DNA of 64,000 nt from Ministeria vibrans ATCC 50519 (lineage: Eukaryota > Protista > Filasterea): assembly GCA_943704425.1 (NCBI GenBank), contig CALSCP010000894.1:52671-116670 (forward strand), written 5' to 3'. Shown one piece after another: positions 7,001 through 43,400 of the stretch. The first letter of the stretch is position 1. Every line of letters starts with the position of its first letter. The position numbers and the translations under genes were made by a program. Under the pieces are notes generated by a model that ran no database searches, was not told where the DNA came from, and saw nothing but the letters and a program-made list of their open reading frames with translations.

Positions 7001-10000
7001 GCAGGCGCTGTGCTGAACGTGCTCATAGGACATTGGCCACGAAAGTTACCGAGCTTGTGGACACCTTTGACATGAGTTTTGACAGTCATGTGGTGTCGGT
7101 GCTCAATTCGGATTACCTTGCGAAGCTAGAGTCGGTGTGGACCGACCTGTCGCCCAAGAGCAAGCGGCCAACGCAGCTGCGTGTGGCCGCTCTCAATGCA
7201 CTGCACGAGTCGCTCATGAATCCGAGCGAAGGTGATGCGTTCAAGCTCAGTGACGACGAAGAGCACGAGGACACGGACGACGATGATGACGATGGGGAGG
7301 GGGGTGGTGAAGGGAGTGACGCGAAAAAGAAGAGGAAGAATCGAGCATCGGCGCTGGTGCGTCTCTTGTTGGATGTGGCAACGAGTCATGCAGATGTGCG
7401 TGTGCGCTCTGCTGCTGGTGAATGCCTCGGTCACATTGGGGTGCGAACAGTGGCACTCGGAGGTGATGAAGTTCTGGATGACAAAGAGTCGCTCACGGCG
7501 CCCATTGCTACCGTGCCCAAGGTGTATCAGGTGGCCCTGGACAACAGCATGAAGCAACGCAACCTGCGGCTTATCGAGGCACTCGACAGCTATGCATTTG
7601 ATCGGGACATTCGCCTTGTTGAGCCGACACTGGTGTGTCTTGCGGCGGTACAGTCACACGAACATTGGCAGGCGGTGATGAAAATCAAGAGTCCCCTCGT
7701 GACTCTGTGGCGTCGACGCTATCAGTGGATGATGAAAAATAACGGGGGAGAAGTCTCTCCGCTTGAGCTTGACGGCCGCAGAGCTTTTACGAGCCACGAC
7801 TGTCTCAATCCCAGTCTGTGGACCACAACAACGGCAGCGACAGGCACAAGCGACGGCGACGAGACGGCGGTGTACGCCCAGTGGGTCTGCCGCTTAGCGT
7901 GCAGCATGATCTGGGGACAATGTCGTGTGGGCGATCGTGTGCTGTTGCGCCTGTTGGGTCCGTTGTGTCGCGAGAGCGCTCCATTTGCACGCACTGTGCT
8001 TCCTTGGCTGGTACACGAGCTCCTGATGAACGCTGTGGACACTGACGAGAAGCCGCTGTGCGCACATGAAGTGCGCCAAAAGTTGACTATTTGCGTGCAG
8101 GCGCTGCTGTCCGCCGATGGTGTGCATTCAGAAATGGTTGCGACCGCCATTGACGTAATTTTGTATCTACGCACCCAACGCCGTCCTGCCTTGGGCGACA
8201 ACCACAACTCCGTTGTTGGTGGCAGCTATGGCAAGAAGAAGCGAGCGGCCGCGACGGGTACGTCGTCGTCGTCGTTTGTGGATGAGACTGGATTCTACAG
8301 CATGTCGGGCTTTGATGACAACTTCTGGCTGGGCCTGGAGAAGAGTCTGGGCCGTGTGGCACGCAGTGCACACGAGACGTGCCGACGACACCACACGGCA
8401 CTGATGTTGGCGGAGCTTGCGTGGTACGAGCGATTTGAGGACGCGCCCACGTCGAGTGCTGTTGCGTCCGACGAGGAGATGCTCGAGCGTCGTGAGCAAC
8501 TTGAGTTGTTCTTGAGCATTTCGCAAAACTTGAGCGATCCGGATTTCTTCTATGGAGTCAATTTGGGCGATGACACACGCACGCTGTTGAACACGTATGA
8601 GCACGAGCGAAAGTGGCGATCCTCTGTGGGACTGTACGACATGCAGTGGCGCGTGGACCGGTCGCAGTCGTCGATGGACCGTGGTGTGGCCAACATGACT
8701 GGTCTGGCGCGTTCGCTGCACCAACTGAGCCACTATGGGCTGCTCGACATGCTCTTGAGTCAGACGTCGTTGGCCGAGTCGTCGTCGTCGTCGGCGGCAC
8801 TGCATGCCCTACAAGCAGAGACGTCGTGGCGTCAGACGATGTGGGAGCCACTGGAGACGGTGGACGGTTCGTTGGTGCACGACGAGACGACTTTGGGTGG
8901 TGGTGGACGACATTTGCTGTCGAACGTTGTATCCTTTCATGAGTCACTTCGACTGGGCTTGGCCTCACTGCGCACACACAATTACGGTGTGTTCCGGGAC
9001 GTGGTGGATCGAGCGCGGCTGTCGGTGGTGAGCGAGCTTGTTGCGTGCGAGCGTCAGTCGTCCAAGGCCACATGTGTGCTGTTGGGTCGGCTGCAGTGTT
9101 TGGTGGAGCTTGACGAAATGTGGGTGTATCGTGAGCAAAGTTTGGCTGCCCCAGGGGGAGGAGAAGGGGGAGGAGAAAGTGGTGGGGGTGATATGGCGTC
9201 GCTCATGGCGTTGGTGGGGCGCTGGGAGGCACGTCTGAGAGGATTGGATGCAGCGGGAGCCGACGATGCGACACTTTTTGATGTGTTCGATGTGATTTAT
9301 TCGTTGCGCACGTGCATGCTTCACGGTCTTGGTAAGGAGGGTATCAACGTGTTGCAGACACAGCTGTTGCTCTTTGCGCAGTCAGCGCGTGGCGCGGGTC
9401 GATACCATTTGGCGAGCAATTGTTTGGGGCGTCTTAAGGCGACGCTTGGCGCAGACTATGAGAAGCGCTACGGGGCGTGTGTATGGGCGCTCAAGCTTGA
9501 AGAGGCGCATCTTTTGTGGGATCAAGGGGAACGGGCTTTTGCCAAGCGCTCGCTCAAGGCTTACTTGCAACTGTACGATCTTGGAAAAGGGTGTACTGAA
9601 GGCGATGGAGGAGGAGGAAGACGAGGAGGAGGTGAGCGACGCGGGCGCACACGCGGACGGGCTGATGATGATGATGGGTGGATTGGAGGTGGAGGCGGAG
9701 GTGGAGGTGGGGGGCCTCGTCAGCTGTCATTGTTTCAGAGCAGTTTTGATTCTGAGCTGGAGTCGAGTGCGTTTGGTGTTGGTATTGGAGGAGGAGGAGG
9801 AGGAGGAGGAGGAGGGTATCTTCGACGAGGGCAGTCGACTGCTGGTGGTACAACTGGTGAACTGGCTGTGCCCATGACAGGATCATTTGGGGACTTTAGT
9901 GTTGACGGTGAGGATGCGGTCGTGCCCAGGCGGTCAGGTCTGACACGACGTGCGACGGATCCGTTTATTGCGTGGGCAAAGGGACTGCGTCTGTGTGCCG

Positions 10001-12526
10001 AGTGGTCTGCGGAGCTTCGCGATGAGTCGCCACATGTGATTATGTCACAATTGGAGCGTGCGGCGCGAGCGGTGCAGGAGGATGCGGAAGAGGATGGCGA
10101 CGAGGAAGGTGACGATGGAGGGGAAGGTGATGGAAAACGAGCGCTTGCGAGTGCTGCGTACCTGGCACTTGCGCGCTACACAGACCGTCACTTTCAGCAG
10201 CTGATTGAACTTGACCAGAGCGAACAGGACACGGAGTTACGCGACCGACTGCAAGCGGAGCAGCGTGAGATTGAGGTGATGAGGAAGCAGAAGGGAATGG
10301 ATGCGACGCGATCGACTGAGCTGCGGAGCCGTTCGAAAGATCTTGCTAATCAGATTGATGGGATGAATGAGCAGAGCAAGCGGGTGCGAGCGGATCGTGA
10401 GCGGTTCCTTAAGGAAGCACTGAAGAGTTACATTAATGTGTTGCGACTGAGTCGTCGTGGTACAAGTGTGAGTGGCTCTGGTGAAGGCGACAGTCCCATG
10501 CTCGCCATGTTGCGACTGTGTTCGCTGTGGCTTGAACATGGCGAGACGCATCCCGGAGCTTTGTCGGCAGTTAAGGAGCGTTTAGGCACGCTGCCTACGC
10601 ATCACTTTTTGCCTCTGATTCATCAGTTGACGGCGCGAATGGGATCAGCCACGACGTGCTTTCAAAAGACGGTGCAAGCGCTTGTACAGCGGGCCGCCGA
10701 AGACCATCCACACCATGTGCTGTTTAACCTGATGGCGTTGGCGGACGCCGAGAAGGAGATGGAGCAGCGTAAGCCGGAGTCGAGGAAGCTGATGTCGAGC
10801 AGTGCATTGTCGAGCAGTGGTGTTGGTGCGCGAGCGGGCAGTGTGGGGCAGGGTACGAGCCAAGACAGTGGGTCGGGGGGTGTGGGGGCGAGTTGCAAGA
10901 GTGAGGCGAGTGCGGTGGCAGCAGAGATGATTGCCAAGGTGGGAGCGGGGCCGCTGGCCGAGCTGGTAGCGCAGCAGCAGGCACTGGCGGACGCGTACTT
11001 TTGGCTGGCGTACCGCTCGAAGCCCAGCCAGGAGTATCCGACGACCACACCCATTCCCATGAAGGCCAGCGATCCTATCATGTCACTGCGCGGCCTCAAA
11101 TTGGTACCGGTGCCCACCAGTCACATTCCTGTGGACCCACAGTGTCGCTACACGAGTCTCGACACGGTGGTCTCCTTCAAACCGACTTTCTGGATTCCAG
11201 GTGGAATCAATGCGCCCAAAGTGGTGGAGTGCATCGGCTCGAGTGGGCGGGTGTACCAGCAGCTTGTCAAGGGGAAGGATGACATGCGCCAAGATGCAGT
11301 CATGCAGCAGGTAAATAATACGCTTTTGATTTGCTATTGTAATATTTTGCCTCGCTTTCTTTTACTTGTCCCTCACTTTTAATGTTTGATCTGCAGGTAG
11401 AATCCCTCTTGCTTTTTTCTTCCATTAATGTTTTTCTTCTTTTTTTGGTTGTTTTTTCTTCTAGGTATTCGGTTTGGTGAACACACTGCTGGAGCAGGAT
11501 GCGGGCACGCGACGACGTGGGCTGCACGTGCGACGGTACCGCGTGGTGCCGTTGACGCGCCGCAGTGGGCTGCTTGAGTGGGTGACCAACACGAAGACAC
11601 TTGGTGACTACCTAGTGGGCAAGACGGTTCGTGGTGTGTGCTTGCAGATGGGGGCGCACAAGCGGTACCGCCCGCGCGACTGGGAGGCGACTGATTGTCG
11701 CAAGAAGATGAAGGACCTGCAAAAGAGCGATGATCGGGCTCAAATTGCGTGTTACCGGGACATAATGGAGCACTTTCGACCGGTGATGCGGCACTTTTTC
11801 TTTGAGATGTTTCCCGATCCAAGTGAGTGGTACCGTCGACGACTGGCGTACACGCGCAGTGTGGCAACGAGCTCGGCTGTGGGCTACATTGTGGGACTGG
11901 GCGATCGTCATGTGAATAACATTTTGATTGACATGCGCACGGCGGAACTGGTGCACATTGATTTGGGCATGGCCTTTGAGCAGGGCAAGCGCCTGCTCTA
12001 CCCGGAGCTGGTGCCCTTCCGGCTGACACGGGACCTTGTGGACGGAATGGGAGTGACGGGTGTCGAAGGGGTGTTTCGCGGGTGCTTTGAACGGACGCTG
12101 CGGCGACTCCGGGAGGATCAGGACCCCCTTTTGACCGTGTTGGATGTATTGCTACACGATCCTATGTACCAGTGGACTCTGACGGCCGACCAGGCGATGA
12201 TTAAGCAGGCTGACGACGATGACAACGAGGGTGTTGAGGAGGTGGAACAGAAGCAAAAGCAAAAGCAGAAGCAGAAGCAGTCGTTGAAAGGATCTGGCGA
12301 GAGTCGTGCAAGCAGTGGAAAAGCGGCGAAGGGTGAGAAGCGTGAGGAGGAGGATCGGCGCAATCCACAGGCAATGCGCGTGTTGCAGCGACTGCGGCAG
12401 AAGTTGCATGGTGTGGAGAATGGCGTTGCACTCAGTGTGGAAGGCCAGACGGCGTACTTGGTCGAGGAGGCACGCAGTGTGAGCAATCTGGCCAAGATTT
12501 TCAATGGTTGGCAGGCATGGTTGTAA
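1006..12526 (+). CDS. ATM: ATM/Tel1 serine-protein kinase (PIKK family), 4 exons: 1006-1068, 1333-1539, 1618-11310, 11465-12526 (~3,670 aa)
   Basis: Exon 1 MVNRIAEACRLLNSSRQAERK matches the ATM TAN motif. Kinase motifs: GGINAPK, KGKDDMRQDAVMQQ|VF, GLLEWV, GLGDRHVNNIL, HIDLG, ELVPFRLTRD. FATC end GWQAWL. All three GT-AG introns are phase-consistent. Confidence 0.95.
2122..2196 (+). repeat. In-frame 36-bp tandem duplication within ATM (GALETRSSTQCR/GALETPSLTQCR)
   Basis: Two adjacent copies of ggggcacttgaaacgc(g/c)tagtt(c/t)gacacagtgtcgc differing at 2 positions. Confidence 0.9.
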
Positions 12527-15909: not shown

Positions 15910-18900
15910 TCACTTTTTCGCTTTCTTCGCTTTCGTTGTCTTCTCCGTCTCCGTCTCCACCAGCGCTCTCTTTCCCTTTGTCTTCTTCGGCGTCTCCTTC
16001 TCCGTCTTGCTCCTCTTCCCTCCAGCGCCTTCCCCGTCCACTCCTGACGCTGCCTTGCGCTTGCCTCCACCTACCGCAGCCACCACCTCCCCCTTGACCT
16101 GTCGTGCCACCCGGCCCACTTTGGTCCCACCTTCGTGGCCCTCGACTGTCCCGTCCACCGCTTCCACCACCCGTGACCAGCTCGCCCCCGCCTCAATACC
16201 TCCCTTGCGCATCGACTGTGCCCACGCACGCACAAACTGGAGCACATCAATCAAGTGGGCACTCTTCATCTGCTGCGCTCCCTTCTTCTTCCCCTTTCCT
16301 TTTCCCTTGCTCTTCTCCTTCTCAGCGTCCTTCTCCTTCTCTGTCTCCGTCTCCGTCTCCCCCTCTTTCCTCTGTGTCTCTCGTTGCAGTGTCATTGCCA
16401 GTGCCTCGTGCATCGCATCGACTGTCTTCGCGTCAACCTTGACCCCATCCTTCACTGTGCCGCCCTTAACCAGTGCTTTGAGCAGTCGGAATGTCTGCGA
16501 CACAAGGAACCCTCTTCCGCCTCCTTCCCCAGCCGTCATACCCGCCAGCATGTGCGGCACAAGCACGTGCCATGCCAGTGCGCTCTGGCGTCGAATCAGC
16601 TCGCCGAAGAAATCCGCTTGCAATCGGGTGCCGCGACGTGCCAGAAAATGATCGTACGCCGTCTTGTACAGCTGCGACAGTCGCTCCTCGTCAAGACGAC
16701 CGCTCGCCTGCAGCGTGCGCACCAACACAATGACGCAACTGGCCACGAGACTCGAGTGCTGCATGTTGAGAATGCGAGTTGTCTCGCGGAACACTTCGTC
16801 CAGACTCGCATTGAGACGCTCCAGTCCCGCCGCCGAGTGCACCACCGGCACATGGCGCAGGTGACACACACGGTTGCGCAGGATTCCCGCCACCCGATCG
16901 TACAACATCTTCGCAGACTCGTTGGCTGCGTTGACACGCAGTGCATGCAGCAGCGGCACGATCAGATCGAGGCACAGCTCGGGACCCGTCACTGTCTCTG
17001 CGGCCGTTTCTACTTCTGCACTTGCAGTCGCCTTCTTCGCCTTCTTCGGAGTCTTCTTCTTGCTCGGCGTCACCGCCGCCACCGCTGCTGCTGCTGGCGC
17101 TGGGCGGTCCACTCGACGCACAAAAAGCGCAAGAAGCTGCAGGACGCGCATCTTGAAGTCGGCCGAGCGTCGCTGGGCGTTCTTGCGCTCCTGCTTGCGC
17201 TCACTCGTTGATCCCGCACCACTTCCACCCAACGCACGCGACTGTGCCTTGAATGCGGCCACGAGAAGCCCGTCAAGGCGCTCCATTGCATCATCGTCCA
17301 TCGATGACACGTCGCTCTCGTTGTCACTGTCGTCGTTGTCCTTCATCTCGTGCACAGCGGGTCCCAGTGCCAGCCGAATGCGCGCACGCAGATCCTCATC
17401 GACATCGGCTTTCTCATCCCCATCATCATCTTCCTCCTCCTCTTCCTCCTCCTCCTCTTCCTCATCGTCACTCGACGACTCCCCTCCACTCATCTTCTCC
17501 ATCTCATCATCATCCCCTTCCTCCTCCTCTTCCTCCTCCACGTCGTCGTCCTTGCCACTGTGCTCCTCCGGCAGTGCCGTCACCACATCCACCAGCAACT
17601 CCATGGCGGCGCGTGTCATCTTCGGTGCGAGCAACACAAATGCCTGCTCGACAATGTGACGCTGGCAGACGGACGCCTGTGCCAGCCAACTCAGCAGAAT
17701 ATCAACCAACACTGCAAAATTGTCGGGGCGCGACTGCTTTGCGTCCTCGCCTTCCCCCTCCTCCTTCTCCACACTCATGCTGCGCTGCTCAAACTCCACC
17801 TCGTAGCACGTCAGCAGCTCCTCACCCGACGCATCGGCATCGGTCGCAGTGCTCAACGCCAGCGCACACTCGAGCGACGCGTACGACAAGAGAAGCGCAT
17901 AGCCACGCGCAGTGGACCCTTGCGACTGCGACGCAAGCGCACGAGTCGCCGCCTGAAGTCGCTCTCGCACACTCTCCGGTGCTGTTTTCTTTGCCTTCTT
18001 TGCGCCCTTCTTACCGCTACTGCTACTACTCTTGCGTGCGTCAATCCACTCGTCCAAGAAAGTCACCCACAGCTGGCCGTCGTCGCGTTGTCCCGGAATC
18101 ACTCGTGTCTCCTCCGCTTCGCTTGTCGCCTCTTCCTTCTCCTCCTCATCTGTCACCTCCTTCTTCTTCGACTGAATCGTACACAGCTCGGCAAGAACCG
18201 ATCGGAATCGCTGCAGACACTTCTCGTGCGTCCACTGTCGCTTCTTCTTGTCCTCATCGTCATCATCATCGGCATCATTCTCCTGCGCCTTGGCATCGCC
18301 ACCAGTGGCCTCCTCTTCGACGTGCTTCTTGGCCTCGTCGAGGGCCAGTGCCAGCAAATGGGTTGCGGCGCGCTCGAGCCACACGTCCGAACGAGGCAAG
18401 TGAGGGTTGCGCACAAGGGCAACAAGCTGGTCGGCGGCCCAGTGGCGCGAGACTGACACGGTTGGGGTGGCAGTGGCAGAGGGGTCTCTCCTGGTCGCGT
18501 CGATGAGAAACTCGACGTAGTCGGTGACGCCCTGGGCCGACAGCTCGGCAACAATAGACTCGACAGTGCGTGTGCGAGTGCGATTGTCAAAGCGAGCAGC
18601 GCCATGGGGCCCCAGGAGATGTGTGACGGCGTGGATGCAGAGGACGTCGCTGCGGCGGGCGCGAACGGCGAGCACAATGGCCTTGGTGGCGTGTGCGGCG
18701 GCCGGGTGCAGGTTGTTGGTTGGCGCCGCGAGGTTGTTGACGAGGCAGCGCAGCAGATGCGGCGAGAAAATGACGTTGAGACGGTCGCTGGGCCAGTCGG
18801 GGTTGGCAAGGGCACGCTCAAAGAGCATCAGGCCCAACAGACGACGCTCGTGCGACGACTCAAACAGCTGCTGGTCCACTAAAGTCGCCCAAACGCGCTC

Positions 18901-19966
18901 GAGCAGCTCAGGAGCGCGCGTGAGCACGGCATGAAACAACGTGGTCCACGCAAAATGCACCTGGGGTGCCTGAATGTACTCGTTGCTGATGCGCATCACC
19001 TTGGCAATCGTCTCGAGGTTCTTCTCGTGCAAAGGGTTTCCCTTGCGCCATCCCGCAAACACACTCTTGTCCGGTTTGCCGCCCAGCAGTTCGTAGGCAA
19101 TCAGTGCCAGACCAATATGGGAGCCTGTAGTGTACATCTAAAGAACAAAAACGACAAAAAGTGTTTGAGAGAAAAGCGCACGTTACGATGGAAAGGGATG
19201 TGTCGTACGGGACGATTCAGTTCTTCGTCGTCTTCGTCGTCTTCTTTGGACTTGGAGACTTTGGTTGGGGCCGGGAGAAACTTGAAGAAGAGCGTGAAGG
19301 GCTCGGCCTTGAGCAAGTCGAGGGGAAAGGACGCCGAGCGCATGAGGTCGGCGAGGATGCCGAGTGCAATGGGCTCCATGTACGGCTTGAACTGCGCACA
19401 GGCGACGAGCTCGTTGGCCATGCGCAGCGCCTCGTTGCGCGTGAGCTTGCGGCCTGATCGCACAATGGAGGCAATGCAGAAGACTCGGCCGTAGCAGGTG
19501 TCGCGTGCCTCGCTTGGCTTGAGCGGCGCAAGGAACTGAAAAGTCGTCGCGACGGTCGAAATGTCTTCGTTTGCTGCAGCATCGCCATTGACGCCGTCTG
19601 CAGAGCCGTGGTACGGCGCATCAAGTCCGCCATTGCGGCCAAGGACATCGTCAAGGAGGAGGAGGACCTGGCGGACGCTGATGCGGGCGGGGAGGGCCTC
19701 GACAAGCATGGCGAGCGCAGACGCAAAGCCAGGACGCGCACCCGCATGCCCCGACGCCAGGCCGCGCACCAGCCGACGAAGCGAGTAGTCTACGTTCCCC
19801 GCGTCGTCTGACGCTTTGATATCCTGCAAAAGTGCCCTGTCAGTCTGAACGCGTGGGGGAAAAAAGTTTTTTGGCGTCGCACCTCAATGAGCGCATTGCA
19901 CGCCGCAACGCGCGACGACTGATCGACCTTGGCAAGGTTTCCAAAGTGTACAAGGATGTTGGCCAT
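15910..19966 (-). CDS. MYBBP1A: MYBBP1A / Pol5 ('DNA polymerase phi') nucleolar rRNA-biogenesis protein
   Basis: N-terminus FGNLA...RVAACNAL, YSLRRLVRGLAS...ARPGFASALA, SSHERRLLG, LVDILLSWL, MDDDAMERLDGLL, DFKMRVLQLL, acidic insert and Lys-rich C-terminus. ATG at 19966 with short introns. Confidence 0.88.
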
Positions 19967-26886: not shown

Positions 26887-29886
<3,000 letters not shown>

Positions 29887-30078
29887 ACGATTAATAATAA
29901 TAATTGGTTTGGTAAATAAATCACTATTGGTAAGTCTGAAATTATGAGTCGATCGACAGTCCCTTTCTTCTACGTCGCCAAGCCGCTCAAAACTACTTTG
30001 AAAGCAAGGTGATAATTTAAAGGACGCGGTCACGGACTCACGAACAACGTAGTAAAAACAAACTGAAACACGATATTA

Positions 30079-32407
30079 TTACACACCACTGCCATCGCGA
30101 AAGAACAGAATGTCGCCCGCGTTGCGCGTCTCGTCCCAGTCATTCCAGATGCGCCCCACTAGCAGCCCTTGCCACTTGTTCTTCATCCGACGACACAACT
30201 CCACCGCACTAATCACCGTCTCGCCAGCACGGAACGCCTTCTTCTGCGCTCCCAGTGCCTCCACCAGCATCCGCGTCATCTGCGTCTCATCCTTCCATGC
30301 AAACGCCGACGCACTGTTCAGTGAGCTGGCCATCATCTGTCGCGCATAGTCCGGCACTGGCTTGACACTCGCGCGCATCGTCAGGTCCCCATCCGCACTC
30401 ACCAGTGCCCCCGCATTGCAGAAATCACACACCACCAGAATGTTGCACCCGCGCCAGTGTGCCTGCTCCTCTAACACCGCCGCCAGTGTCTTCAAACTAA
30501 ACCCCGACACAAGATCGTCGATCCAGCGTGCGTCGCTGAGAATCAGTCCACGGCTTCGGTCCTCCGCACCATGCCCAATCAGGTGCACCACCAGCAACGA
30601 CGCCTTGGACTTGCCACACGTCGCGCTGAGCTTCGCTGCAGCCTCCGCAATAGTATCCATGGTGACTCTCGCTGTGGTGACTTCGTCTGTGACCGCCTCG
30701 ACAGTAAAATCGCGGTCCTCCCACAGTGTCTTGAGCTTCGACACACTCTTAAGAACACCAGGTAAATCAGGACAGTTCGCCAACTGCGGGTTGCTCGACG
30801 ACTTGTACCGACTCACACCCACGATCAGTGCAGCTGCGTGCGTGTACGCCGATGTTCCTCCAGCACCTACAAACAAAACATAAACAATTGTCAGATTTAA
30901 ACTGAATAATGTTTCAGATTTGACCTGCGTGATTGCACCACCACAGCTCAAGACGTTCGTTGCACTGTCGTTCGCCAGCGTGCGTCATCAACTCCAAATT
31001 CACCCGCCCCACCTCACGGTACTCCTCAGGTGCCCCCGCCACGTGCTCAGCCTCAAACAACGGTCGCGTCATGTCAAACGGGTGCGCTGGCACGACCACT
31101 GCTCTCCCTCCACGCCATCCCCACCGCAGCGACACAGTCGACGAGCACACCCGCTCGATCAGTGCATCCACCGTGTCACGCACATTCTCCGCAGGTGTGT
31201 CCGCATACAGTTCCACACGCACAAACGCCTCGCCCGTGTTCAGTCGCAGTCGCACCGGCACCATCCCATTGCCCTTCATCAGAAGCACATTCGTGCACCG
31301 CTGAGTCGCTTGGATCGCCGCATTCCCCACACTCTGCCGCCACAGTGCAACCACCAGCAAATGGAAGGTCGCCAGTGACACCGGCAGCACCGCACCACCC
31401 ACCATTTGGTACAGCAACAACTGCGCCGGTCGATCGCCAGTCTGCTCGACAAACGGTGCGTCGTCGGGCAGCAGCATCGGCACAAGAAGTCGGTCGTCGT
31501 GTCGGAACACCAGACTCAAGTGCTCAAGGGTGCGCAGAAACGCCGCAGGATCAACCACATCGGCACCCGCCAGCAGTGGCTGTGTCTTGGCCAGTGGTGC
31601 AGCTGCCTCCCACACGAGCCACTGTGCCACGTCAAACGGGAATCCGGCTTCGGGGCGTCGTCGTGCAGCGTCCAGAGCAGTCAACAGACGTTCGGTGCGG
31701 TTGAGATCCTTTGCACACCCTGCCTCCTCCACCTGCGCCAGCATTCCGCGCGCCCGCTCGCTCTTCGCCCGTCCCCATCGTGCCATCACCACCGAACACA
31801 GCAGTTCAAGCGCCGCAATCAGTCGAGGCACATCAAACACAACCATGTCGGTGTCGGCGAGCGTCGCACGGTCCACACGACTCACCAGAACGTCCGCAGA
31901 GTTCTCCAGGTACGGAATCACTCCATCGTGCAGTGCCGTCGTGTCGGGCATCAGGTCTCCCAGTGTGATCCGTGGCGCGTCGTTGAGCTCAAGTGTTGGC
32001 AGCTCACGCACTGGACACATCAGCTGGACGTTGCCCATCCGCGCCCATCGTCCAATCAGGTCCTGTGCACACACGTACTCAAGCGGCACAGGTCGTGGAC
32101 GCACCGCCGAGTGCAGTGCCGTGCTGACCGCAGCGAGTCCCAGGCCCTTGGCACTGCCCACCTGGAAGAAGGGCACACTCGGTGTCGATGGCGGTCGGAT
32201 GAGGTGCGGCCCAAGCACGGGCACAACGAGACGACGCATCTCGCGCGCCACCAGTTGCAGCAGATCGCGCGGAACGGTGTCGTCAGTGAACGTGTCGATG
32301 TGTGTGCCCACAATGAGGACGCGAAAGTGCGATGACTGCGTGGTGGGCACTTGGTGCGCGATGAGGTGCGCCCATTTCGACACTGTGTCGTACTGGCGTT
32401 GAGCCGC
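30079..32407 (-). CDS. Roco protein: Roc GTPase (C-terminal half visible) - COR - caspase-like (peptidase C14) domain; 5' end lies in an assembly gap
   Basis: Roc G4 VLIVGTHID and G5 FQVGSAKGLGL. COR motifs PVPLEY, YLENSADVL, LEHLSLVF..LLVPMLLPD and FHLLVVAL. A 58-nt GT-AG intron (30867-30924, phase 1 on both sides) joins it to ALIVGVSRY..LIGHG..VCDFCNAG. Confidence 0.8.
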
Positions 32408-33392
32408 NNNNNNNNNNNNNNNNNNNNNNNNNNNNNNNNNNNNNNNNNNNNNNNNNNNNNNNNNNNNNNNNNNNNNNNNNNNNNNNNNNNNNNNNNNNNN
32501 NNNNNNNNNNNNNNNNNNNNNNNNNNNNNNNNNNNNNNNNNNNNNNNNNNNNNNNNNNNNNNNNNNNNNNNNNNNNNNNNNNNNNNNNNNNNNNNNNNNN
32601 NNNNNNNNNNNNNNNNNNNNNNNNNNNNNNNNNNNNNNNNNNNNNNNNNNNNNNNNNNNNNNNNNNNNNNNNNNNNNNNNNNNNNNNNNNNNNNNNNNNN
32701 NNNNNNNNNNNNNNNNNNNNNNNNNNNNNNNNNNNNNNNNNNNNNNNNNNNNNNNNNNNNNNNNNNNNNNNNNNNNNNNNNNNNNNNNNNNNNNNNNNNN
32801 NNNNNNNNNNNNNNNNNNNNNNNNNNNNNNNNNNNNNNNNNNNNNNNNNNNNNNNNNNNNNNNNNNNNNNNNNNNNNNNNNNNNNNNNNNNNNNNNNNNN
32901 NNNNNNNNNNNNNNNNNNNNNNNNNNNNNNNNNNNNNNNNNNNNNNNNNNNNNNNNNNNNNNNNNNNNNNNNNNNNNNNNNNNNNNNNNNNNNNNNNNNN
33001 NNNNNNNNNNNNNNNNNNNNNNNNNNNNNNNNNNNNNNNNNNNNNNNNNNNNNNNNNNNNNNNNNNNNNNNNNNNNNNNNNNNNNNNNNNNNNNNNNNNN
33101 NNNNNNNNNNNNNNNNNNNNNNNNNNNNNNNNNNNNNNNNNNNNNNNNNNNNNNNNNNNNNNNNNNNNNNNNNNNNNNNNNNNNNNNNNNNNNNNNNNNN
33201 NNNNNNNNNNNNNNNNNNNNNNNNNNNNNNNNNNNNNNNNNNNNNNNNNNNNNNNNNNNNNNNNNNNNNNNNNNNNNNNNNNNNNNNNNNNNNNNNNNNN
33301 NNNNNNNNNNNNNNNNNNNNNNNNNNNNNNNNNNNNNNNNNNNNNNNNNNNNNNNNNNNNNNNNNNNNNNNNNNNNNNNNNNNNNNNNNNNN
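32408..33392. other. Assembly gap of about 985 N, followed by a long (GA)n microsatellite to about 33553
   Basis: Run of N; hides the 5' coding part of the Roco gene. Confidence 0.99.
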
Positions 33393-33557
<165 letters not shown>

Positions 33558-34438
33558 TGACAACTGAATCATAGAATACATGCACAGTGGCGCTGGTTCT
33601 ACGACGCCTCAGTGGTCGACTGCAGCAGTCAATTTCTTTCGACCGATCAAACACTCAAAAGAAACAAAACAAAATGTCACACAAGCAATCGAATGGAAAC
33701 CAAAAAGGAAAGCCTCGTGAACACAAGAGACGACGTACACAATAAAACATTCTCTTCCGCAAAACAGCGCGAGCAATGTCGGGCGGATGTGATTATGAAG
33801 TGATTATCACAAACTCCTCACAAACAAGTCAAACTGAGTTGGTCGAACAGACAAAACAAATCCCATTGCGATTCCCAGACGAAGACCCACTGCGCCAATC
33901 AAACACACCACCCACCACATGCCACCGCCGCAGTACGACCCGCTCTACTTATTCTTTTTTTTCGTCCCAAATTGTTAATAAAAATTCGTCTCACGCGAAA
34001 AAGACACAAAAAAACGCCCGTCCCCGCACTCCCTGACATCATGCCATACCTGGATGTTCGTTTCTGCGCGCTGGGCCTGTTCGCTAGTGATAAAGTGATG
34101 AGAATTTCGGACTTTTTTTTTTCTCTAAAATCAGTCGAAAAACAACAAATGCGCTGTGAGTGCAATGGCGGAGTCAGGAGAGGTGCCACACAAGCCGTAA
34201 AAAGTGCTCAACACGTCTAATCAACAATAGAAAATTGTTAATTATTGTGAAATCAGAAATGTGATGAATAATTATTATTATTATATTTTTTTCGTAGCTT
34301 AGAAAGTGGTTCTGAGCTGTTTTCTCGTTGCCGCTTTTTGTATGGGCTCATTGTGCTCGGGGTAGCAGCAGATTTCTTTACTCATAAATTGGAAATGTCT
34401 TTTTATTGCCAAAAATTCAGTTTCATTTCACTCTCCTT

Positions 34439-37400
34439 TCACTCTGTCAACTCGGCGCGCACATCGCTGAACCGCATGTACTCGTCAAGTCCACGCGTCC
34501 GGTAGAGCGCGCTGGCAGCCTGCCGCAAGTACTTGTGCGCCCACACCAGCTTGAAGCGGTCTTGTTCGGCGGTGGTGTCCTCCTCTGCAAAGTAGAGTGC
34601 TCCGCTGAAGACAGTCAGCTGTGCGAGCGTGCGCGGAGGAATTGCATGGGCTGCGCCGTCGCCACGCACGCAGAACCACGCGTGTTTCTGGCCACGGCGC
34701 ACACGCGGCAGCAGTGCATACAGCACAACGTGCACATGCAGTTGCTTCAAGCACAGAATCGTATTCGCCTCTACGGGACTCACGAGCACCGACTGTCCCG
34801 TGTGTCCAAAGTGCACCAGCCAGTGCGCCGGACGCAGTGTCCGCATCAGTGAGCACCTCCCCGCGCCCGCAGAGCCCTTGACACTCTGCACATACGACTG
34901 CGTCATCAGAAGAGACACTTTCTCCTCTCGCATCGCAATCTCCATCCGCGTGTGATTATGCTTCACCTTCTTATCCCACGCGAGAATCGGTACAAGATGA
35001 AGCGCCTTCAGTGTAGCATTCACATCCGGCTCAAATAACGCCCAAGCACTCAGCACCTCTGGCTGCGCGTGCTCTGGCAGCTGCCCACGCACCACAGCCC
35101 CCAACAGCACACGACTGGGCGCCTCCTTCTTTGCCATCTGTCGCACGCTGCTCTTGCACTGCTGTCGCTCCACCTCAGGCTCTTCCTCAATCTCCCGCTC
35201 TTGCTCTTCGTCGGCCGTTGTCGCCAGACACTCCACTGTCTGCGCATAGTCGCGACACTGCTCCACCAGTGGCATGGCGTCCTCCGTGAGCGTGCATGCC
35301 GCAATGGCTCGCGCAATCACCTCGGGCAGAGGCGTGAGTACGCGCGAAGCGGCAAAAGACTCTCGCAAGGTAATAGCGTCGCGACGTGGTCGTTCCTGTG
35401 CCCTTTCCCGCAGCATTGCATAGTTTGTTGGAAACACGCGGTGACGTCTGCCCGACGACGTGGCGTCTGCCATAAGCGCCCGCTCGCGCAAAAACGCATG
35501 GCCGTGCAGCGCCCACGAAAGAAACCCGTCGCGCGTCGCCTTCACGCTCTGCCGTAGCGTCCACTCGAGCACGTCCACGTGAGCCGGCGTAACCGCCCCG
35601 TTGCGCATCACCTCATGATGCACATCGGATGCGACAAAGAATGACACGGTGTGGCCCTGACCCAGCTTGCGCATCCGCATGGCCGCCTGCAGCAGCTCGT
35701 CCTTGCGCACTCCCTTACCCACCGTCAGCGCCGCGTGCGTGGCCTGTGGCAGCCGCACGTCCGTCCCACGCGTGTGTCCATGGTCAATGTAGAGCAGACA
35801 GCGGCTCAGGTCGTTTGCGTACGTGCTCAGCACAAGCTCCACCTCACGTCCCTCTCGGTCGCGCACCAGCAGTGTGTTGTTTTCGTCAAAGAACACCACC
35901 GCACTCGCGTCCATCCGTTTCTCAAGCCACTGGTGCGCCAGTGAACGGTTGTCCAGATCCAACACAAGCGCACCACAGTCGATGAGCACCTGAAAGGGCA
36001 CATTGGGTCGCTTAGGGTCGGGTCGCAGCAGCTCCTGCAGCAGCTTCTCGCCCGTCACATTGGCTTCGAGCGCACGGTAGTTGTCGTTGTCGTGATGAAG
36101 CAGATTCGCACACACCTCGGCGTTGGTCTGGCGCAGTGTGTTGAGATCGCGCGCACGCACACCGCGCGGCATCAGCAGACGCGTGTCGTTGGTGCCGCTG
36201 AAGCCACTCACGGGGTGGACGCGCTCGCCCCGGCAGCCGCACAGGTGCCACGCACTCGTTGACATCTTCTTCTGAAACTGCCTGGCCTCGCGCGGAAAGA
36301 CAATTTCGCTCAGGTAAAAAGCAACCGTCTTGCTGTTGTGGCGCAAGTGAGGGAACAGGTCGTGCTGCAGACGCGGAAGGTCGCGCTCATTGAGACTCGT
36401 CACATCGCGTAGCGACGCCTCTACGTCAAGCCCGGCAATCCAGTTCGCATACACATGGTCACTGCCGGGCAGCTGCCGCAGTCGCCGTAGCACTTCCACC
36501 AGCTCGGGAAGGCGCAGGCCAGAGCGCAAATACGAGAGTGCAGTCAGTGTCAACGCCATGTCTGCATCGCCAAACTCGGTGCGCTCCACAGGCATGTCCT
36601 TGGCGCGATAAGGAACCGCCATCATGCGCAACTTTTCCGCTCTGACCGCTGGCACACCGTATTGCACACGCCACCGCTTGCTCAGTGCCAGGCGAAGGAC
36701 TCCCAGTGCCAATTGCCCACGTACGATCAGCAGCGCCGACACGAGCTCCTCGTTCCACCGCACTGCGTCATTGTCTGCGCCCAGCGGCTCATCGTCCTCC
36801 CCGGTCACATTCAGCAGCGTATCAAACCACTGTTCCGTCTCGCGCGAGAGCGTCTCGCTGAGAATCATCTCACGCATTGGTGCAGTGCACTCTAGTGCAA
36901 ACAAGCGCTGGACCGTCTCGTTGGCGTACGTCTGTGCGGTGCTCGAGAAGAGGTCGTCGACAAGCAGATGACCCAGTCTCTCAAACGCACGTGCCTCCAC
37001 CTCGGCACCACCCACAAGACGCACTACAGGGTACGTACCAGGAGCCATCGCGCGATACTCGAGGTCCGGGCACTGCGGCGCAACACGTGCGACACCGTCC
37101 AGAATCGCATGCATCACATGCCAGCGCAGTGGTCCACCCGCAATCTCCGCTCGTCCGCCTACCGAGTAAACCAACTCGCGTCGATGGTGAAGCACATCGT
37201 CAACCTCGTCAAAGAGATCGCGCGCCTCGCGATGCAACTGATTGTGCAGCTGGGCCAGTGCCACGCTCGTCTCCGACGAGCTGTCGTCGCGGAAGGCCAA
37301 ATCCCACAGACGCAGTCGGAGGCTCTGCAAATGCTCGGGTTGTGCAAGAATGACTCCCGACTCACGACGACACACGTCCATTGTCTTGCGCATGCGCTCT

Positions 37401-40400
37401 ACACTCTCTTGCGTCAGTGCGTGGTCGCGTCGAATGGGAAACTCAAACACCCGGCGCGCCAGAAAGCCACCCAGCTTGAATCGCAACACCTGCAGATTGG
37501 CTCGGTGCAACGACTGTGGCACTACAATGCGCACCAGTCGCTGCTCTCCATCGGCGAGCGTCGCACTCGTCAGCGGCATCGTCACCGACGTTTTGCCTTC
37601 GCCCATGTTTTGTTGCACCGTAGCTCCGCACTCGTCGTCGCCCAGCTCGGGATGCATCATACGCTGTGCCACATCCACCTGCAAAGGCCACACCGTCAGA
37701 TCGTTCTCCAGCTCAAACACAAGCAGTTCGGGCCAGCTGGCACAGCCGTTGTCAAGACGAACATGCGGAGGCGCCAACAACTCACGCTGCAGCATGTGCG
37801 CCTCGTCCGTCGCTCCCGCCGCGTACCACAAACACCGCCGGTACTTGCGCAGTCGCGACTGTGCCACCGCCATGCCGCCTGCCACCGCGAGCGCCCCCTT
37901 GGTTGGTGTCTTCCAGCCGCGTGTACGGTACCCCTGAGCACGCATGGCCGCCCCCGTCAGCCACATGAGATGCGTCTCAGGCACACACCGCGCCACAAGG
38001 CCCGCCTTGGCAAGCACGGCGTACGACGACGCAGAACTTGCCGCCTTGTGTAGCGCGCTAGCGCCCAATTGTGCCAGTTTCTCGTACTTGCGCATGGCCC
38101 ATTGGAGAAAGCCCAGGGGCACACTCGTCGGCATTGCCTCGTCTTGGGCCGTCTGCTGATCGCGCGTTTGCTCAAGCGCTTTCACACTCTCCGTCAAGTC
38201 ATCCATAAAATCCTTCTTGACAGGCTCCTCCTCCTCCCCCTCCTCCTCACCATTCATCTTGTCGAGGAAGGCCGAGAGGACCGTCAGGTCCACCTTGGCA
38301 CTTTGGGGCCATTCAAAGCATCGTTGTTCAAGTCCCTCCATCTGCGCGCGCTCCTTCTCATACTCCAACCACTCCTCGTAAAACGTCGGTCCTTGCGTGG
38401 TCCACAGCCGTGCCACACACTCTAAATTGACGTCAACGAGCGTCACAGGTGCGACAGGTTTGAGCTGTGGCTCCCCACTTGGCAGATACATGAGACGCGG
38501 CGGGAGCAAGGGTCGCCACTCGTTCATGGGCTCACCGTGAAAGGGACACCCACACGCGTACAAGACGCGCTTCACATACTCGTTGTACAGCTCAACAGCG
38601 TTGCGTTGTTGCAGCATCACTCGAAGTCGCTCTTCAAACTCGTACTTGCGGAGCAACGGCATTCCATTGACGGTGAGCGCAGCGATGGCGTCGCTCCGGT
38701 AAAACGCGTCGAGTTTATCGCGGCACAAGTCGACGCTCACCTTCCCGTCCCCTTCGTACGCAACAGGCCACGAAATTGCATTCCCCGTCAGCAGACGCCT
38801 GGCAAAGTGTACAGCTGCGTTGACACCTTTCTGTACCCGAGTTTCCAAATCCTCCTCCTCTTCCTCTTCCTCCTCCTCGCCGTCATCGTCATCATTAAAC
38901 AAGACCAAGTGGTTCGTCTGTGGCAGTACTTCGTTCGGGGGAACCAGCGACTCTCGGAACATGAATTGGATACTGTTGTTGAAGTCCTCGTCCAATTCGT
39001 TGCTCGCATCGGGTTTGGCCATGTCAAACTGCTCGAGGGGAGAGTCAGGGCGGATTGCGGGAGCGCACATCGCGAGACTCACAAGCGCGTCAATGGCCAC
39101 GCTATCCTCCAGCTTGTATGACAGATACGACAGCAGAAGAGCCACGTAGGGGCGGTCGTGGTCGCTGAAGGTGGACACAAAAAAGTGAAGGCCAGCAAAG
39201 TCGGCGGGCAGTTTGGCGCGCGAGAGAGCGGGGTTTGAGATTCGCAGAATGTCATAAAAGTCTTTGCAGCTGCTGGTGCACGGACCCGCTCCAATGGCAC
39301 TGCAAAGTTGTGTCATGGAGGGGGCGCGTGGGGGCTCGTCAAGTCTGCAAATACGGCGCACAGTGGACGTGACGCGAGCGTTGGGAACCCATTTGTGTGT
39401 AAGCACCATGCGCGTCTGACGCGTCACGGGTAGCGGAATTTCCATGAGAGTGGGCAGCGACGGAGCGTGATTCCAGTAGGCGCGCAGGTGCAAATTGTCT
39501 GGCTTGGGCGGGGCGGACGCCGTGGCGTCATCAAAGAGAAACGCCAAGGGAACGCTCTCGCTGCGCAGCGCGTGGCACTGCAGCTTGAGCACGACAGCGG
39601 CTGTGTGCGCTGGCACCTCCGCATTGTACCGGATGATCTCCATGGAACGTCGATTGGGCGGGTAGGCGTCTCGTGTGGGCACCAGGTTCTCAATGGAGTC
39701 GAGGAGCGCGAGGCATGCAGGAGAGTATGGACTCGCGGGACGGCAACGGCCAGACTGAAGCAGCGTGAGACACCGTTCGATGCCAGTAACACCGGTGAAG
39801 GGATCGGGCAGCAGTGACGAGGTGTGCGCGTGCAGAGCGGCCAGGTAGAGCCACGAGAGTGTGCTGTTTGCACCGCACAACAAATGGAGATCATCGTCAA
39901 GAGTATAGCGGAAAAACGACGGCTGCGAGTACAAATGGTCCAGATCCACGTGTGTCGAGTGGTGCGTGTCTGGCCGAGCCAGTGACTGCGACGTGATCGC
40001 AAGTAAGGCTGTGGTGGAGGCCAGTACATTTGAAATTTTGAGCTCACTCTTCACGTTGGTCTTGGCCGTCTCCTGGGCAACGAATGCAGTTGCGGCGACA
40101 GCTGAAGAGGCTTTTGCGCTGCGCGTGTACACATGTAGTGGACCATGGGGAACAAGCACGCAACGTTTCTTCAGGGCAAACGCACTCTCAGTCTGGCACA
40201 GCACAAGGCGATGCTCGAGTCCCACTAGGGTGTGCAGCGAGGCGTCCGTATCCACGGCCCAGCCCACAAACTCGCGCGAGTGGAATCGTTGGTCAGAGTG
40301 GGACCAGTGGAAGGTGAGAGCATAGCGCGGCATGTGAAGGGAAATATGGAACGGACTCGCGCTTGAACCTCCGTCCTTTTCTGCGTCTTCCTCTCTTGGC

Positions 40401-43400
40401 GACCTCCACCAGATGTGCAGATGACGATCGCGTTCGAGGCGCTCAAAGTGGCGTGCAACGCTGCGCCCGAGTCCCGCGTGAGCGTCCATCAGCTGGCCGA
40501 GTTGGTCGTGATGGAGGCGCCAGCCACCGGGACGCGACTCCGTCGCGTCCGAGTAGCATAGCTTGTGCGGTGCCTCGTCGACGTTGTGAAAGGACGTGTC
40601 AAGAAAGAAGACGGGGCGTAGGAAGACAATGCGCGCGTGGGGATCAAACCAGTGACTGTGATCTTCAATGAGCTTCTCCGGCAGATCCAACAGTGGTGGT
40701 GACTCCAAGGAGGCGTTGACCTTCGAGCCGTAGATGGATGGAGAGAGCAGCTCAAGGGTACGACCGTCGCGGCGATGTTCCACGATGCACAGTTGTGTCG
40801 TGTGAAGGCGACGCCCAAAGACAAAGCGAGATCCATTGGCGTCGGGACGTGTTGCCTGACGATGCGTGAGAAACCTGGTGGGTGGCTCCATGTGCACTTG
40901 AAAGACATGGGTGCCAAAGTGGCGTTTGAAAAACAATTGGCTGGTAATGGAGCGGGCAAGACGGGTGAGGGGCGCGCCGTTGACAAGGACATCCCCACGG
41001 AGTGGGTTGATGAAAACCTGGCTAGGCACGACTTGGGCTGCAGCGGTCTCCCTGTCGGACCATAAGCACGAGAGATGCAGTGACCCGTCAGGACAGTCGG
41101 ATACCTGAATTTGCGACGGCTCGCCCTCTTTGTAGTAGCGCGCGAGAAAGTGTACCAGACCCATGTGCGCCTTCAGGCGCTCGACAAGAGAAGAGCGGAG
41201 ACGCAGAGCTGTCGAGTGGACACGACGGAGAAGCACAGATTGTAGACCCTCGAGGGGTCGCGCGTCGTTGTTGAGCACGTAGTTGTCGTTGATGGACACG
41301 ACCGCCTGTAGCCAATGCGCCACGTCCTTGTCCGTGTCGAGCAGCGTACGGGTGTCTGTTCCGGCAAATGAGAGAGCCAGCGTCATCGCAATGTTGGTGC
41401 TCGTATTGTACAGGTCCTGACGCTCCGCGTCGTCTGTCGTTTGCTCTAGTGTAGCCTCGAGTGAGTTGAGCCACGAGATGGCGTTCTGGCGTGCGAGACG
41501 CACCAGCGAAGAGAGACGCTCAATCAGCGAGGAGTCTTCGTCTTTGTCTTGCGGTGATTTTGACGCGACGCCATGAAATACGTCCGAGACGTGCACAAGA
41601 GCAACGGTGACAAAGGTCAGTGTGCGATATGACTGCCAATTGCCCTCGAGTGTCTGGCGCAAGTTGTTAAGTTCCTCCATGAGAAGAGCGACAAAGGAGC
41701 GGTCGGCGAGAGGCGCGTGAGCGTCGCGTAGAAGGAGGTTTGTCGTGGACACCTTCGAAGTTGAAGGGCCACTCTGCAGCATGGCCTGCAGGAAGAGCTG
41801 CAACACCACCTCGCTCTGCGGCACAAGTACACGCTGATGACATACGCGCAGAATGTTGTGCCACTGAAGCGACGCACCCGCGCGCAGACTGCCAAATGCA
41901 ACCATTTCCGAATTGCTGAAGTCGTCAGGCTTGCGTTGATCATCAATAGCGACGACCGCCTCGGACTGGTCATGCGTGTACGAGTGGAGGTAGTGTGTCA
42001 AGAGGCGCTTGTGAGTGGGATCGTGAATCGCAAAGGAGCACCGCTCGCGATAGAGAGCGGACGGCTCTGTAAGTGGGGGAGGACACGGCGAATGTGATTC
42101 CCCGTACGCGAGCTCGCACGTGAGGTGATTCTCTTTGATGATTTCCGAGTAGTGCACATCTTCGCGCAAAGTGTGACTTTCCGGAGTTGGCTCAAAAGTT
42201 GCAGGGCCGCCCCGCGTTCGCTGACCGCGATTCATGTTGTACGGCTTCCTGCCATAGGCTGCGGCGACTTTGTAGTGACCAGCACCAAACGGCTTTGACT
42301 TGGATGCAAGGTACACGAGGCGTTTGGGCTGTGCGACAATCCAATGTTGAAGACGACGCTCATTCTGCCACGAGAAGCTGAAAGAGGAACGGGAAGCAGA
42401 CGCCGGCTTGAGCCGAGTGTCGAGTAAGGCATTAAGACGAAAGATACTGTCGCGCCAGTTGGCTACAAGTTCGGGCACACGTAACTCGAACACTACAGCC
42501 CACTGCATGTGCTCACGCTCAGGCAATAGACGCTCAAAGATCTCCACCTCCAAATTCTCCAACTGACGCTCAAGAGCACAGCGTTCGCAATCAAAATCGT
42601 GACGTTCCACCAAACTGTACGAGCGGTGCGAGCGAGCCATGGTCATTTCGTGTTGTAGTAGCTTTGCGCGGTTCAACAAATCACGGGCCTCAACCAGACG
42701 AGCTTCATACCTGGAGTGTCAAATTAGGCGCATTGTAAGTGAGTCAGTGCAAGATTGTATTACAGTGTGTGGTGATGTGAATACGCGGAGGGTTTAGAGG
42801 GGCTTATTTGACTGTACCTTTCAAGGTGCTGGAGTTCCAGCTGTTTGCTAACCGCCAGAATCTCTTTTCTTGCGACGCCCATCGACTCTGAATTCTCGGC
42901 AAAGCGCACTTCGAGGGAGTCGGCGGTGATCTTGTCGGACCGCATAGGTCCACTGGCGTACGTCGCAATTTCATTGCGCTGTGTGAAGTAGCGCTGTACG
43001 CGACGAAGATCAACGAGCATGGGGCGATCGGAGACGAGTATCGAGTCGAGGAAGGTTGTGTGGATGTCGGGAGGGTGTTGAAGAAGGATGGGGTGAGCAG
43101 AGACGGTTGCGTGATCAATGAGCATGACAGAAAGGAAGACGGTGAGAATGTGACGTGAGTAGAGGAACGGGTCGGATTGAACAAGGTCACAGTGGGAGTG
43201 CACGAGCTTCAGGTAGGTGTCGAGTCGTGCGTAGAGAGCGATGGCGTTTTCGGGAGTTCCGCCGGAGCGCAGTTTGCGGACACGACGTGGGAACTGGTCA
43301 AGCTCCCAGAAAATGGCAAGATGGTGACACTGCGACGAAAAGTCCCAGTCGTGGGGAATAGCACGCGCAAGGGAGTCCAATGTCTGTGGCGGTGTGGGGT

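Follow-up and report, generated by a model that had tools for sequence, protein, structure and literature searches.

Positions 30,079 to 32,407 of the DNA stretch analysed here, a 64-kilobase (kb) window from a contig of the filasterean Ministeria vibrans ATCC 50519, carry a single spliced and expressed gene on the minus strand, with its 3' two-thirds visible. The product of this part runs from the C-terminal half of a Roc GTPase domain through COR-A and COR-B to a caspase-like Peptidase_C14 domain, and it is highly probable that this Roc-COR-C14 architecture is that of the window gene and of the lineage-restricted family to which it belongs (at least 50 matching loci in a 29.7-Mb genome). Our favoured reading, probable rather than assured, is that it is an expressed member of a WD40-Roc-COR-C14 family acting as a switch-controlled protease in cell death or defence.

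Two open reading frames (ORFs) are listed on the minus strand, at 30914-32383 and 30079-30951, and the frame of the first stays open up to the edge of a run of N at 32407. Read directly on that strand, the sequence passes from ...cacgcag/gtcaaatc... through an AT-rich stretch to ...ttgtag/gtgctgga..., i.e., a GT..AG intron of 58 nucleotides (nt) and phase 1 at 30867-30924, which interrupts a Gly codon after its first base (g/gt); with the intron removed, the exons read on as ...WCNHAG-AGGTSAYTH.... All the motifs quoted in the original prediction, an earlier model-made note on this DNA (VGTHID, VGSAK, LIGHG, CDFCNAG, GVLKS), were found where it had placed them, and the gene is laid out as follows:

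30079 to 30081, minus strand: stop codon TAA of the gene, read from the sequence.
30082 to 30866, minus strand: last exon (exon B), Peptidase_C14; 261 codons, preceded by bases 2 and 3 of the interrupted Gly codon.
30867 to 30924, minus strand: 58-nt GT..AG intron, phase 1; read directly, skipped in contigs of runs X2 and X3, position kept in paralogues.
30925 to 32407, minus strand: Roc-COR exon (exon A) as far as visible, 494 codons up to the assembly gap.
32105 to 32407, minus strand: C-terminal half of the Roc GTPase; approximate boundaries, from a paralogue model.
31466 to 32104, minus strand: COR-A-like region; approximate, from Foldseek and VIA on the paralogue model and from ESM Atlas.
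30926 to 31465, minus strand: COR-B-like region; approximate, from VIA alignments with LRRK1 628-1224 and CtRoco 437-938, which reach the end of the model, and from 3dpt.
32294 to 32311, minus strand: G4 motif VGTHID.
32147 to 32161, minus strand: G5 motif VGSAK.
30568 to 30582, minus strand: LIGHG with the predicted catalytic His, H98 of exon B; from the paralogue and metacaspase-4 alignments.
30409 to 30429, minus strand: CDFCNAG with the predicted catalytic Cys, C149, preceded by D147 (D-x-C as in metacaspases and paracaspases); from the paralogue alignment.
30745 to 30762, minus strand: PGVLKS, site of the metacaspase GC.ND motif, Asp replaced by Ser (S40); from the paralogue alignment.
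32408 to 33392: assembly gap of 985 N, hiding the start of exon A, the exon with P-loop, G2 and G3, and any WD40 exons.

The joining of the two exons can be followed in public reads. When contigs from public runs were placed on 29900-32407, the sole joint was 30864 to 30923, with 58 bases left out whose plus-strand ends are CT..AC; with the cut moved by +2 it corresponds to 30867-30924, and it is present in one X2 contig and three X3 contigs, hence in two studies. The runs carry the label 'RNA?', meaning that their RNA origin was guessed, and two run labels read marine or seawater metagenome; since these X2 and X3 contigs are intron-free, they must be RNA-derived. A near-identical twin gene on contig C2206 has to be kept apart in these data, as 31 of the 40 listed differences between public contigs and the window are alleles of this twin. 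Contigs with the window's alleles, exact at the discriminating sites, are found in X1, X2 and X3 (over 30953-31101, for instance, with 0 differences against 8 for the twin), and, both allele types occurring in all three, three studies thus sampled both copies; between 30983 and 31072 there are eight sites by which window and twin can be told apart. The introns of window and twin differ at 2 of 58 bases with both splice sites identical, and it is very likely that the window copy itself is spliced in this way. That the two listed ORFs form one gene joined via a 58-nt intron, as originally proposed, is thus confirmed by the sequence, by contigs from two studies skipping exactly those 58 bases (the one displayed being of twin type) and by the order of the exons in paralogues.

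For the domain searches, exon A (window 30926-32407, minus strand) and exon B (window 30082-30864, minus strand) served as separate queries and never as a joined protein, while full-span analyses used open frames of paralogues that read through in-frame introns (L010, L015, L025, L028 and L030). Exon B passes the Pfam model Peptidase_C14 (PF00656) with E 2.8e-7 and 30.9 bits against a cut-off of 21.4. Its sole NCBIfam match is a bacterial family, caspase_w_EACC1 (NF047832; E 2e-12, 47.1 bits, positions 2-206 of 211), which lies below the curated cut-off of 140 bits and hence denotes the nearest curated subfamily and not membership. In the exon B alignment, His98, Gly99, Asp147, Phe148, Cys149 and Gly152 are invariant in 24 of 24 paralogues, and the family profile aligns the dyad with GHG and DSCHSG of Arabidopsis metacaspase-4 (E 0.0016). 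The AF2 model of exon B (pLDDT 88, pTM 0.90) gave 266 Foldseek matches in the PDB at E<=1e-3, the leading ones covering the whole domain at E 1e-8 to 1e-6, with MALT1 (2.5e-8), Yca1 (1.4e-7), caspase-8, caspase-9 and Geobacter GSU0716 among them. Exon B is thus modelled as a complete caspase fold of the p20-p10 type, and the predicted C14 peptidase with an intact dyad holds on profile, residues and fold alike. The accompanying claim of closeness to bacterial orthocaspases and metacaspases stands by sequence, where Arabidopsis metacaspase-4, Geobacter GSU0716 and a bacterial caspase of EACC1 type match best and the motif reads D-x-C, not Q-A-C; it does not stand by fold, where MALT1, Yca1 and caspase-8 are about equally close and no subfamily is clearly nearer. 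A profile made from the C14 alignment retrieved 20 matches among 5.8 billion proteins, all of them metagenomic members of the family and none an outgroup, and PADLOC returned a marginal 'caspase' match only (0.0031).

Regarding exon A, predicted fold and language-model features, and not Pfam, make it the C-terminal half of Roc followed by a COR-like module. The paralogue modelled for this part (L010:727-2985) is 58% identical to exon A of the window, and the alignment used, A4, combined L010 with four further read-through frames and 19 sequences of exon A, that of the window among them. The resulting AF2 model has a pTM of 0.71 and a pLDDT of 80-95 in the COR region. Against the PDB, all 31 Foldseek matches at E<=1e-3 are Roco proteins, aligned over 430-590 columns (LRRK1 1.8e-8, CtRoco 4.8e-8, the COR-only structure 3dpt 9.4e-4; LRRK2 and M. 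barkeri Roco2 match as well). In VIA-align, LRRK1 628-1224 aligned with Z 15.2 (450 residues), CtRoco 437-938 with Z 14.2 (429 residues) and LRRK2 1328-1861 with Z 13-14, whereas small GTPases reached Z 12 along about 150 residues only. Moreover, when exon A of the window itself was the query of a protein-language-model search, the ten best ESM Atlas clusters all carried COR-A, COR-B or Roc (score 0.96; 198 of 256 features in common). A profile of 23 family sequences, compared with PDB sequences, matched LRRK2 Roc domains only (seven of eight matches), weakly (E 0.03-0.13), the alignment spanning from switch II to the LRRK-type THLD G4 motif. A HMMER search with exon A among 1.84 billion representative proteins retrieved four matches, all metagenomic fragments of the same family.

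What precedes the visible exons can be read in the paralogues, the loci considered here excluding contigs C2434, C425 and C85 and the longer flanks of L003-L009. The exon order P-loop, intron, Roc-COR, intron, C14 is collinear in about 25 loci. The P-loop GAxxAGK[ST] and the DFAG end of this first exon, where an intron divides the Gly codon, are invariant in 20 paralogues including the 96% twin; the switch I Thr is conserved among them, within a conserved DRSVATR. Taken modulo 3, the lengths of the first intron fall evenly into the three classes (9, 11 and 9 loci), as expected for real introns. The P-loop exon also contains a variable insert of 60-130 residues rich in P, S and T (e.g., L002:3151-3708, minus strand), disordered in AF2 models (pLDDT <50), which could serve as a regulatory or cleavage loop; to our knowledge, such an insert is not a feature of the Roc domains of LRRK or CtRoco. 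The twin, a full WD40-Roc-COR-C14 gene (G000:C2206:10933-15600; L002, L013), carries this exon, preceded by eight WD40-like blades (Pfam WD40 1.9e-19), mostly one per small exon, the last one lying in the same open frame as the P-loop. In at least 12 of 21 loci, strict WD40 signatures are found no more than 1.7 kb upstream of the P-loop exon, a propeller that was out of sight for the original prediction; the remaining upstream regions include four loci with gaps, one with LRR-like repeats and one with an LRR and NB-ARC gene. No NB-ARC or NACHT ATPase was found in any exon of the window gene or its paralogues. Young paralogue pairs are 93-97% identical over more than 5 kb, which shows that segmental duplication continues to enlarge the family.

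Several loci depart from this scheme. At L015:4997-5476 (minus strand), LRR-like repeats (LRR_1 3e-4, at the cut-off) replace WD40 upstream of the P-loop exon, which hints that the sensor module is exchangeable. At L014:4300-6200 and L016:4300-6200, repeat units of about 88 nt in tandem, visible as many staggered blastn matches, occupy the place of the WD40 exons, and an F-box/TPR gene (TPR_12 2e-69) lies further upstream in L014. Directly upstream of L010, the region L012:4489-9431 (G000:C2822:44488-49430) contains a 685-aa frame with LRR_8 (1.3e-6) and then a 958-aa frame with NB-ARC (1.2e-8, above the cut-off), DUF7779 and a weak Roc match, i.e., either a STAND-type NTPase gene or an N-terminal extension. 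Locus L019 (G000:C1339:24670-33624) holds two members in tandem, with C14 exons at locus positions 608-1417 and 7690-8508, while contigs C1441 and C883 hold three and two members, respectively.

By analogy with NLR and apoptosome receptors, a mechanism can be put forward for these proteins, along the lines of the sensor-switch-protease supposed in the original prediction, tentatively and with confidence somewhat short of even. The WD40 propeller would sense a ligand, whose binding would act on the Roc-COR switch by changing either its bound nucleotide or its oligomerisation. The switch would then bring together, or free, the C-terminal caspase-like domains, which would become active in cis by proximity or release. 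The activated protease would cleave its substrates, probably not after Asp, and thereby lead to cell death or defence, as with bacterial Roc-COR-caspase and Roc-COR-CHAT proteins. More speculative still, and in our view possible but rather doubtful, is the extension of this idea to the whole family: an NLR-like immune or allorecognition repertoire of about 50 one-chain 'apoptosomes', each combining a WD40 sensor, a Roc-COR switch and a cis caspase-like executioner, as an independent eukaryotic solution possibly of bacterial Roc-COR-caspase ancestry.

A number of results weigh against the reading of the window gene as a switch-controlled death or defence protease, or against parts of it. Exon A of the window itself has no Pfam match to Roc, COR-A or COR-B (COR profiles PF16095 and PF25497, E<=1) and no NCBIfam match; both COR profiles are also silent on the paralogue frames at E<=1, and Pfam Roc (PF08477), on paralogue frames reaching further 5', gives 19.1 and 20.7 bits against a cut-off of 27. 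The family is indeed too diverged for the Pfam Roc and COR models. Of the upstream Roc and COR modules originally predicted, the G4 and G5 motifs are thus present and COR is recovered by predicted structure and language-model features, while Roc stays below its cut-off and a COR profile match, whose absence the original prediction had counted as refuting, is lacking. The structural evidence comes from paralogue L010, read through two in-frame introns, and not from the window copy. Concerning the latter, G1-G3 and WD40 are not visible, only G4 (THID) and G5 (SAK), and the gap of 985 N, if rightly sized, is too short for the roughly 2.5 kb that the twin has there. The spliced X2 contig displayed is of the C2206 type (19 differences from the window, where the copies differ at 21 sites), so that the junction is proven for the gene pair and not base by base for the window copy. 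As for the mechanism, the Roco protein of C. tepidum is dimeric without GTP and monomeric with it, and a scheme in which GTP makes dimers and dimers activate the protease may therefore be the wrong way round; a two-copy complex prediction for COR-B (exon A residues 300-494) scored 0.00, with the partner fold uncertain and the alignment unused, and speaks neither for nor against the mechanism. Finally, Gasdermin (PF04598) was not seen in the M. vibrans genome, in a search in which control genomes were silent too and bacterial-type gasdermins were not included.

The most serious alternative, although we consider it unlikely, accepts the same protein and gives it another task: it would be a Roco signalling scaffold exerting limited regulatory proteolysis in stress, development, cytoskeleton or membrane traffic, and its family an ordinary expansion of paralogues. 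Eukaryotic Roco proteins of known function are mostly signalling kinases, such as LRRK and the Dictyostelium Roco kinases, and both the purifying selection on Roc-COR and C14 and the silence of PF04598 (in the controls as well) would fit this view. It has nevertheless to account for at least 50 loci with young duplicates of 93-97% identity, repeat-type N-terminal sensors and an effector of caspase fold, a combination which is the pattern of NLRs and of bacterial conflict systems (PMC8195603).

Less probable again is that the window copy is no more than the 3' end of a gene, left by partial duplication or by mis-scaffolding of a 3.8-kb piece, the working gene being the twin on C2206. This improbable alternative draws on the limits of the similarity, as the twin is 96.4% identical over exactly 30080-32407 and the match ends at the stop codon and at the gap; moreover, the piece sits between N runs at 28635-28668 and 32408-33392, no WD40 or P-loop exon is present between the end of the gap and the next gene at 34439, and the gap as sized cannot contain the corresponding part of the twin. 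Against this, both exons are open and the window-twin comparison yields a dN/dS of 0.19 in exon A and 0.30 in exon B (dS 0.084-0.093), from which it follows that both copies have been under purifying selection since the duplication, and window-type contigs occur, as described above, in three studies. An X2 contig furthermore extends 1005 letters past 32405, its first 30 letters continuing in frame as ...DLSVMGFSCQ and then AQRQY, which fits the VFDLSVM strand of the family. The assembly has no counterpart of this continuation, which is also unlike the twin, and the gap is the simplest place for it. Either the real gap exceeds its stated size or the window copy lacks a propeller, and we take the hidden part of the protein to be the P-loop half of Roc, probably with a WD40 propeller in front of it. 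Long (GA)n/(CT)n microsatellites at window 28385-28732 and 33393-33560 flank both N gaps; such runs are a common source of assembly breaks and likely caused the two that bound the 3.8-kb piece. That the twin is a haplotig was considered and rejected, the similarity ending at the stop codon, the flanks being unrelated and both types occurring in three studies. With the 5' third of the window copy in an assembly gap, the complete paralogues are nonetheless better exemplars of the family than the window gene. A third near-identical copy lies at G000:C2434:6584-10406, in pieces of 95-99% identity.

The neighbourhood of the gene in the window is that of an ordinary eukaryotic region. It includes a 3246-aa frame with a FAT domain (PIKK/TRRAP-like) at 1642-11382 on the plus strand, a 1075-aa frame homologous to DNA polymerase phi at 15910-19137 on the minus strand and, directly upstream of the gap and on the same strand as the gene, an intron-free frame of 2746 aa with DUF3638 (4e-58) and DUF3645 at 34439-42679 (minus strand).

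The substrate pocket of the protease bears on a further alternative, namely that the C14 domain is a non-catalytic pseudo-protease serving as an interaction or oligomerisation module only. In metacaspases and orthocaspases, to judge by the pockets of TbMCA2 and MALT1, an acidic S1 pocket formed by the Asp of GC.ND and that of D-x-C gives specificity for Arg or Lys at P1. The original prediction had remarked that the first of these reads GVLKS here, and indeed its position is an invariant Ser40 across 24 paralogues, while the second S1 Asp, D147, is retained. As far as can be judged from sequence, which does not define the specificity itself, a pocket of S40 and D147 probably argues against Asp at P1. 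The loss of the first pocket Asp is what speaks for a pseudo-protease, which the invariance of His98, Cys149 and Asp147 in every paralogue aligned and the complete caspase fold at pLDDT 88 render very improbable. The proposal that a GTPase gene and a caspase gene merely lie side by side, for which the ORF list with its two ORFs and a stop in between might speak, can be dismissed, as the contigs contradict it by skipping exactly the 58-nt intron, the order and spacing are kept in about 25 loci, and the AT-rich intron has GT..AG ends across which the frames join.

STAND ATPases that carry or recruit effectors underlie innate immunity and regulated cell death in animals, plants and fungi. Roco proteins as a parallel switch have been proposed nearly only from bacterial genomes and from one bacterial protease, the Roc-COR part of which is unstudied. 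With a sensor, an LRRK2-type switch and a caspase-fold protease in one chain, the effect of Roc-COR on an output domain would become readable by proteolysis, which bears on LRRK2 as well. The family would also be a candidate for the machinery by which marine protists undergo programmed death or resist viruses, and would bear on the route by which bacterial conflict modules entered eukaryotes.

Several known systems share parts of this design. With LRRK1, LRRK2, DAPK1 and the Roco proteins of C. tepidum and M. barkeri, the window family has in common the tandem fold of Roc and COR (Foldseek 1e-8 to 1e-4, VIA Z 13-15, 430-470 residues), and with LRRK2 the LRRK-type THxD motif in G4. Compared with LRRK and CtRoco, it shows 10-18% identity, a Glu after DFAG, a P/S/T-rich stretch of 60-130 residues inserted after switch I/beta2 and ahead of beta3, and a protease as output domain instead of a kinase. 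With metacaspases, orthocaspases and the paracaspase (C14B), it shares the caspase fold, His-Gly, D-x-C-x-x-G and a single-chain p20-p10 arrangement, but has Ser for the first S1 Asp and neither the type I prodomain nor the type II linker of metacaspases.

The original prediction knew of no characterised protein with this architecture, a statement which no longer holds, given predicted bacterial Roc-COR-caspase proteins (PMC8195603) and the Roc-COR-CHAT protease of Runella zeae (Johnson et al., bioRxiv 10.1101/2021.06.07.447441). The latter, a gasdermin-activating protease that carries this label, cuts gasdermin after Leu247 and kills cells, its His/Cys dyad being required (bioRxiv 10.1101/2021.06.07.447441). 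As in the window family, Roc-COR is followed in one chain by a C-terminal clan CD protease of caspase fold. The Runella protein is, however, bacterial, of the CHAT type and encoded in an operon with its gasdermin substrate, whereas the window family matches Pfam Peptidase_C14 and CHAT only weakly (0.047), and has a WD40 propeller, a disordered Roc insert, introns, at least 50 paralogues and no gasdermin detected, the controls being equally silent. The best named ESM Atlas cluster for a whole paralogue, to be taken as a lead only, is a cyanobacterial COR-A+COR-B+CHAT protein (score 0.84). In a broader survey, bacterial proteins consisting of LRR, AP-GTPase (Roc) and COR were described with at least 24 C-terminal effector domains, caspase included, with up to 11 LRR-Roc-COR paralogues per genome and a predicted counter-invader role (Kaur, Iyer, Burroughs, Aravind 2021; PMC8195603). 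The succession of sensor repeats, Roc-COR and effector, as well as several paralogues per genome, are common to these proteins and to the window family; the bacterial ones are predicted only, with LRR sensors and variable effectors, whereas the family described here is eukaryotic, with a constant C14 effector and WD40 as its usual sensor.

Apaf-1 and other STAND-type NLRs, including the fungal NACHT-WD40 and NB-ARC-WD40 receptors, follow the same logic of a repeat sensor, an NTP switch and a death effector, and the likeness extends to a large paralogous repertoire with WD40 sensors. In the window family, a GTPase of Ras type with COR instead provides the switch, the sensor sits at the N-terminus and the protease lies in cis and is not recruited; the family is hence an analogue of STAND NLRs and not a member. 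Literature full texts on Roco or Roc-COR proteins with metacaspase, caspase or gasdermin yielded no eukaryotic case. What is new here is thus a eukaryotic, WD40-headed, intron-bearing, expanded (about 50 members) and expressed Roc-COR-caspase family, built on a design previously known from bacteria only.

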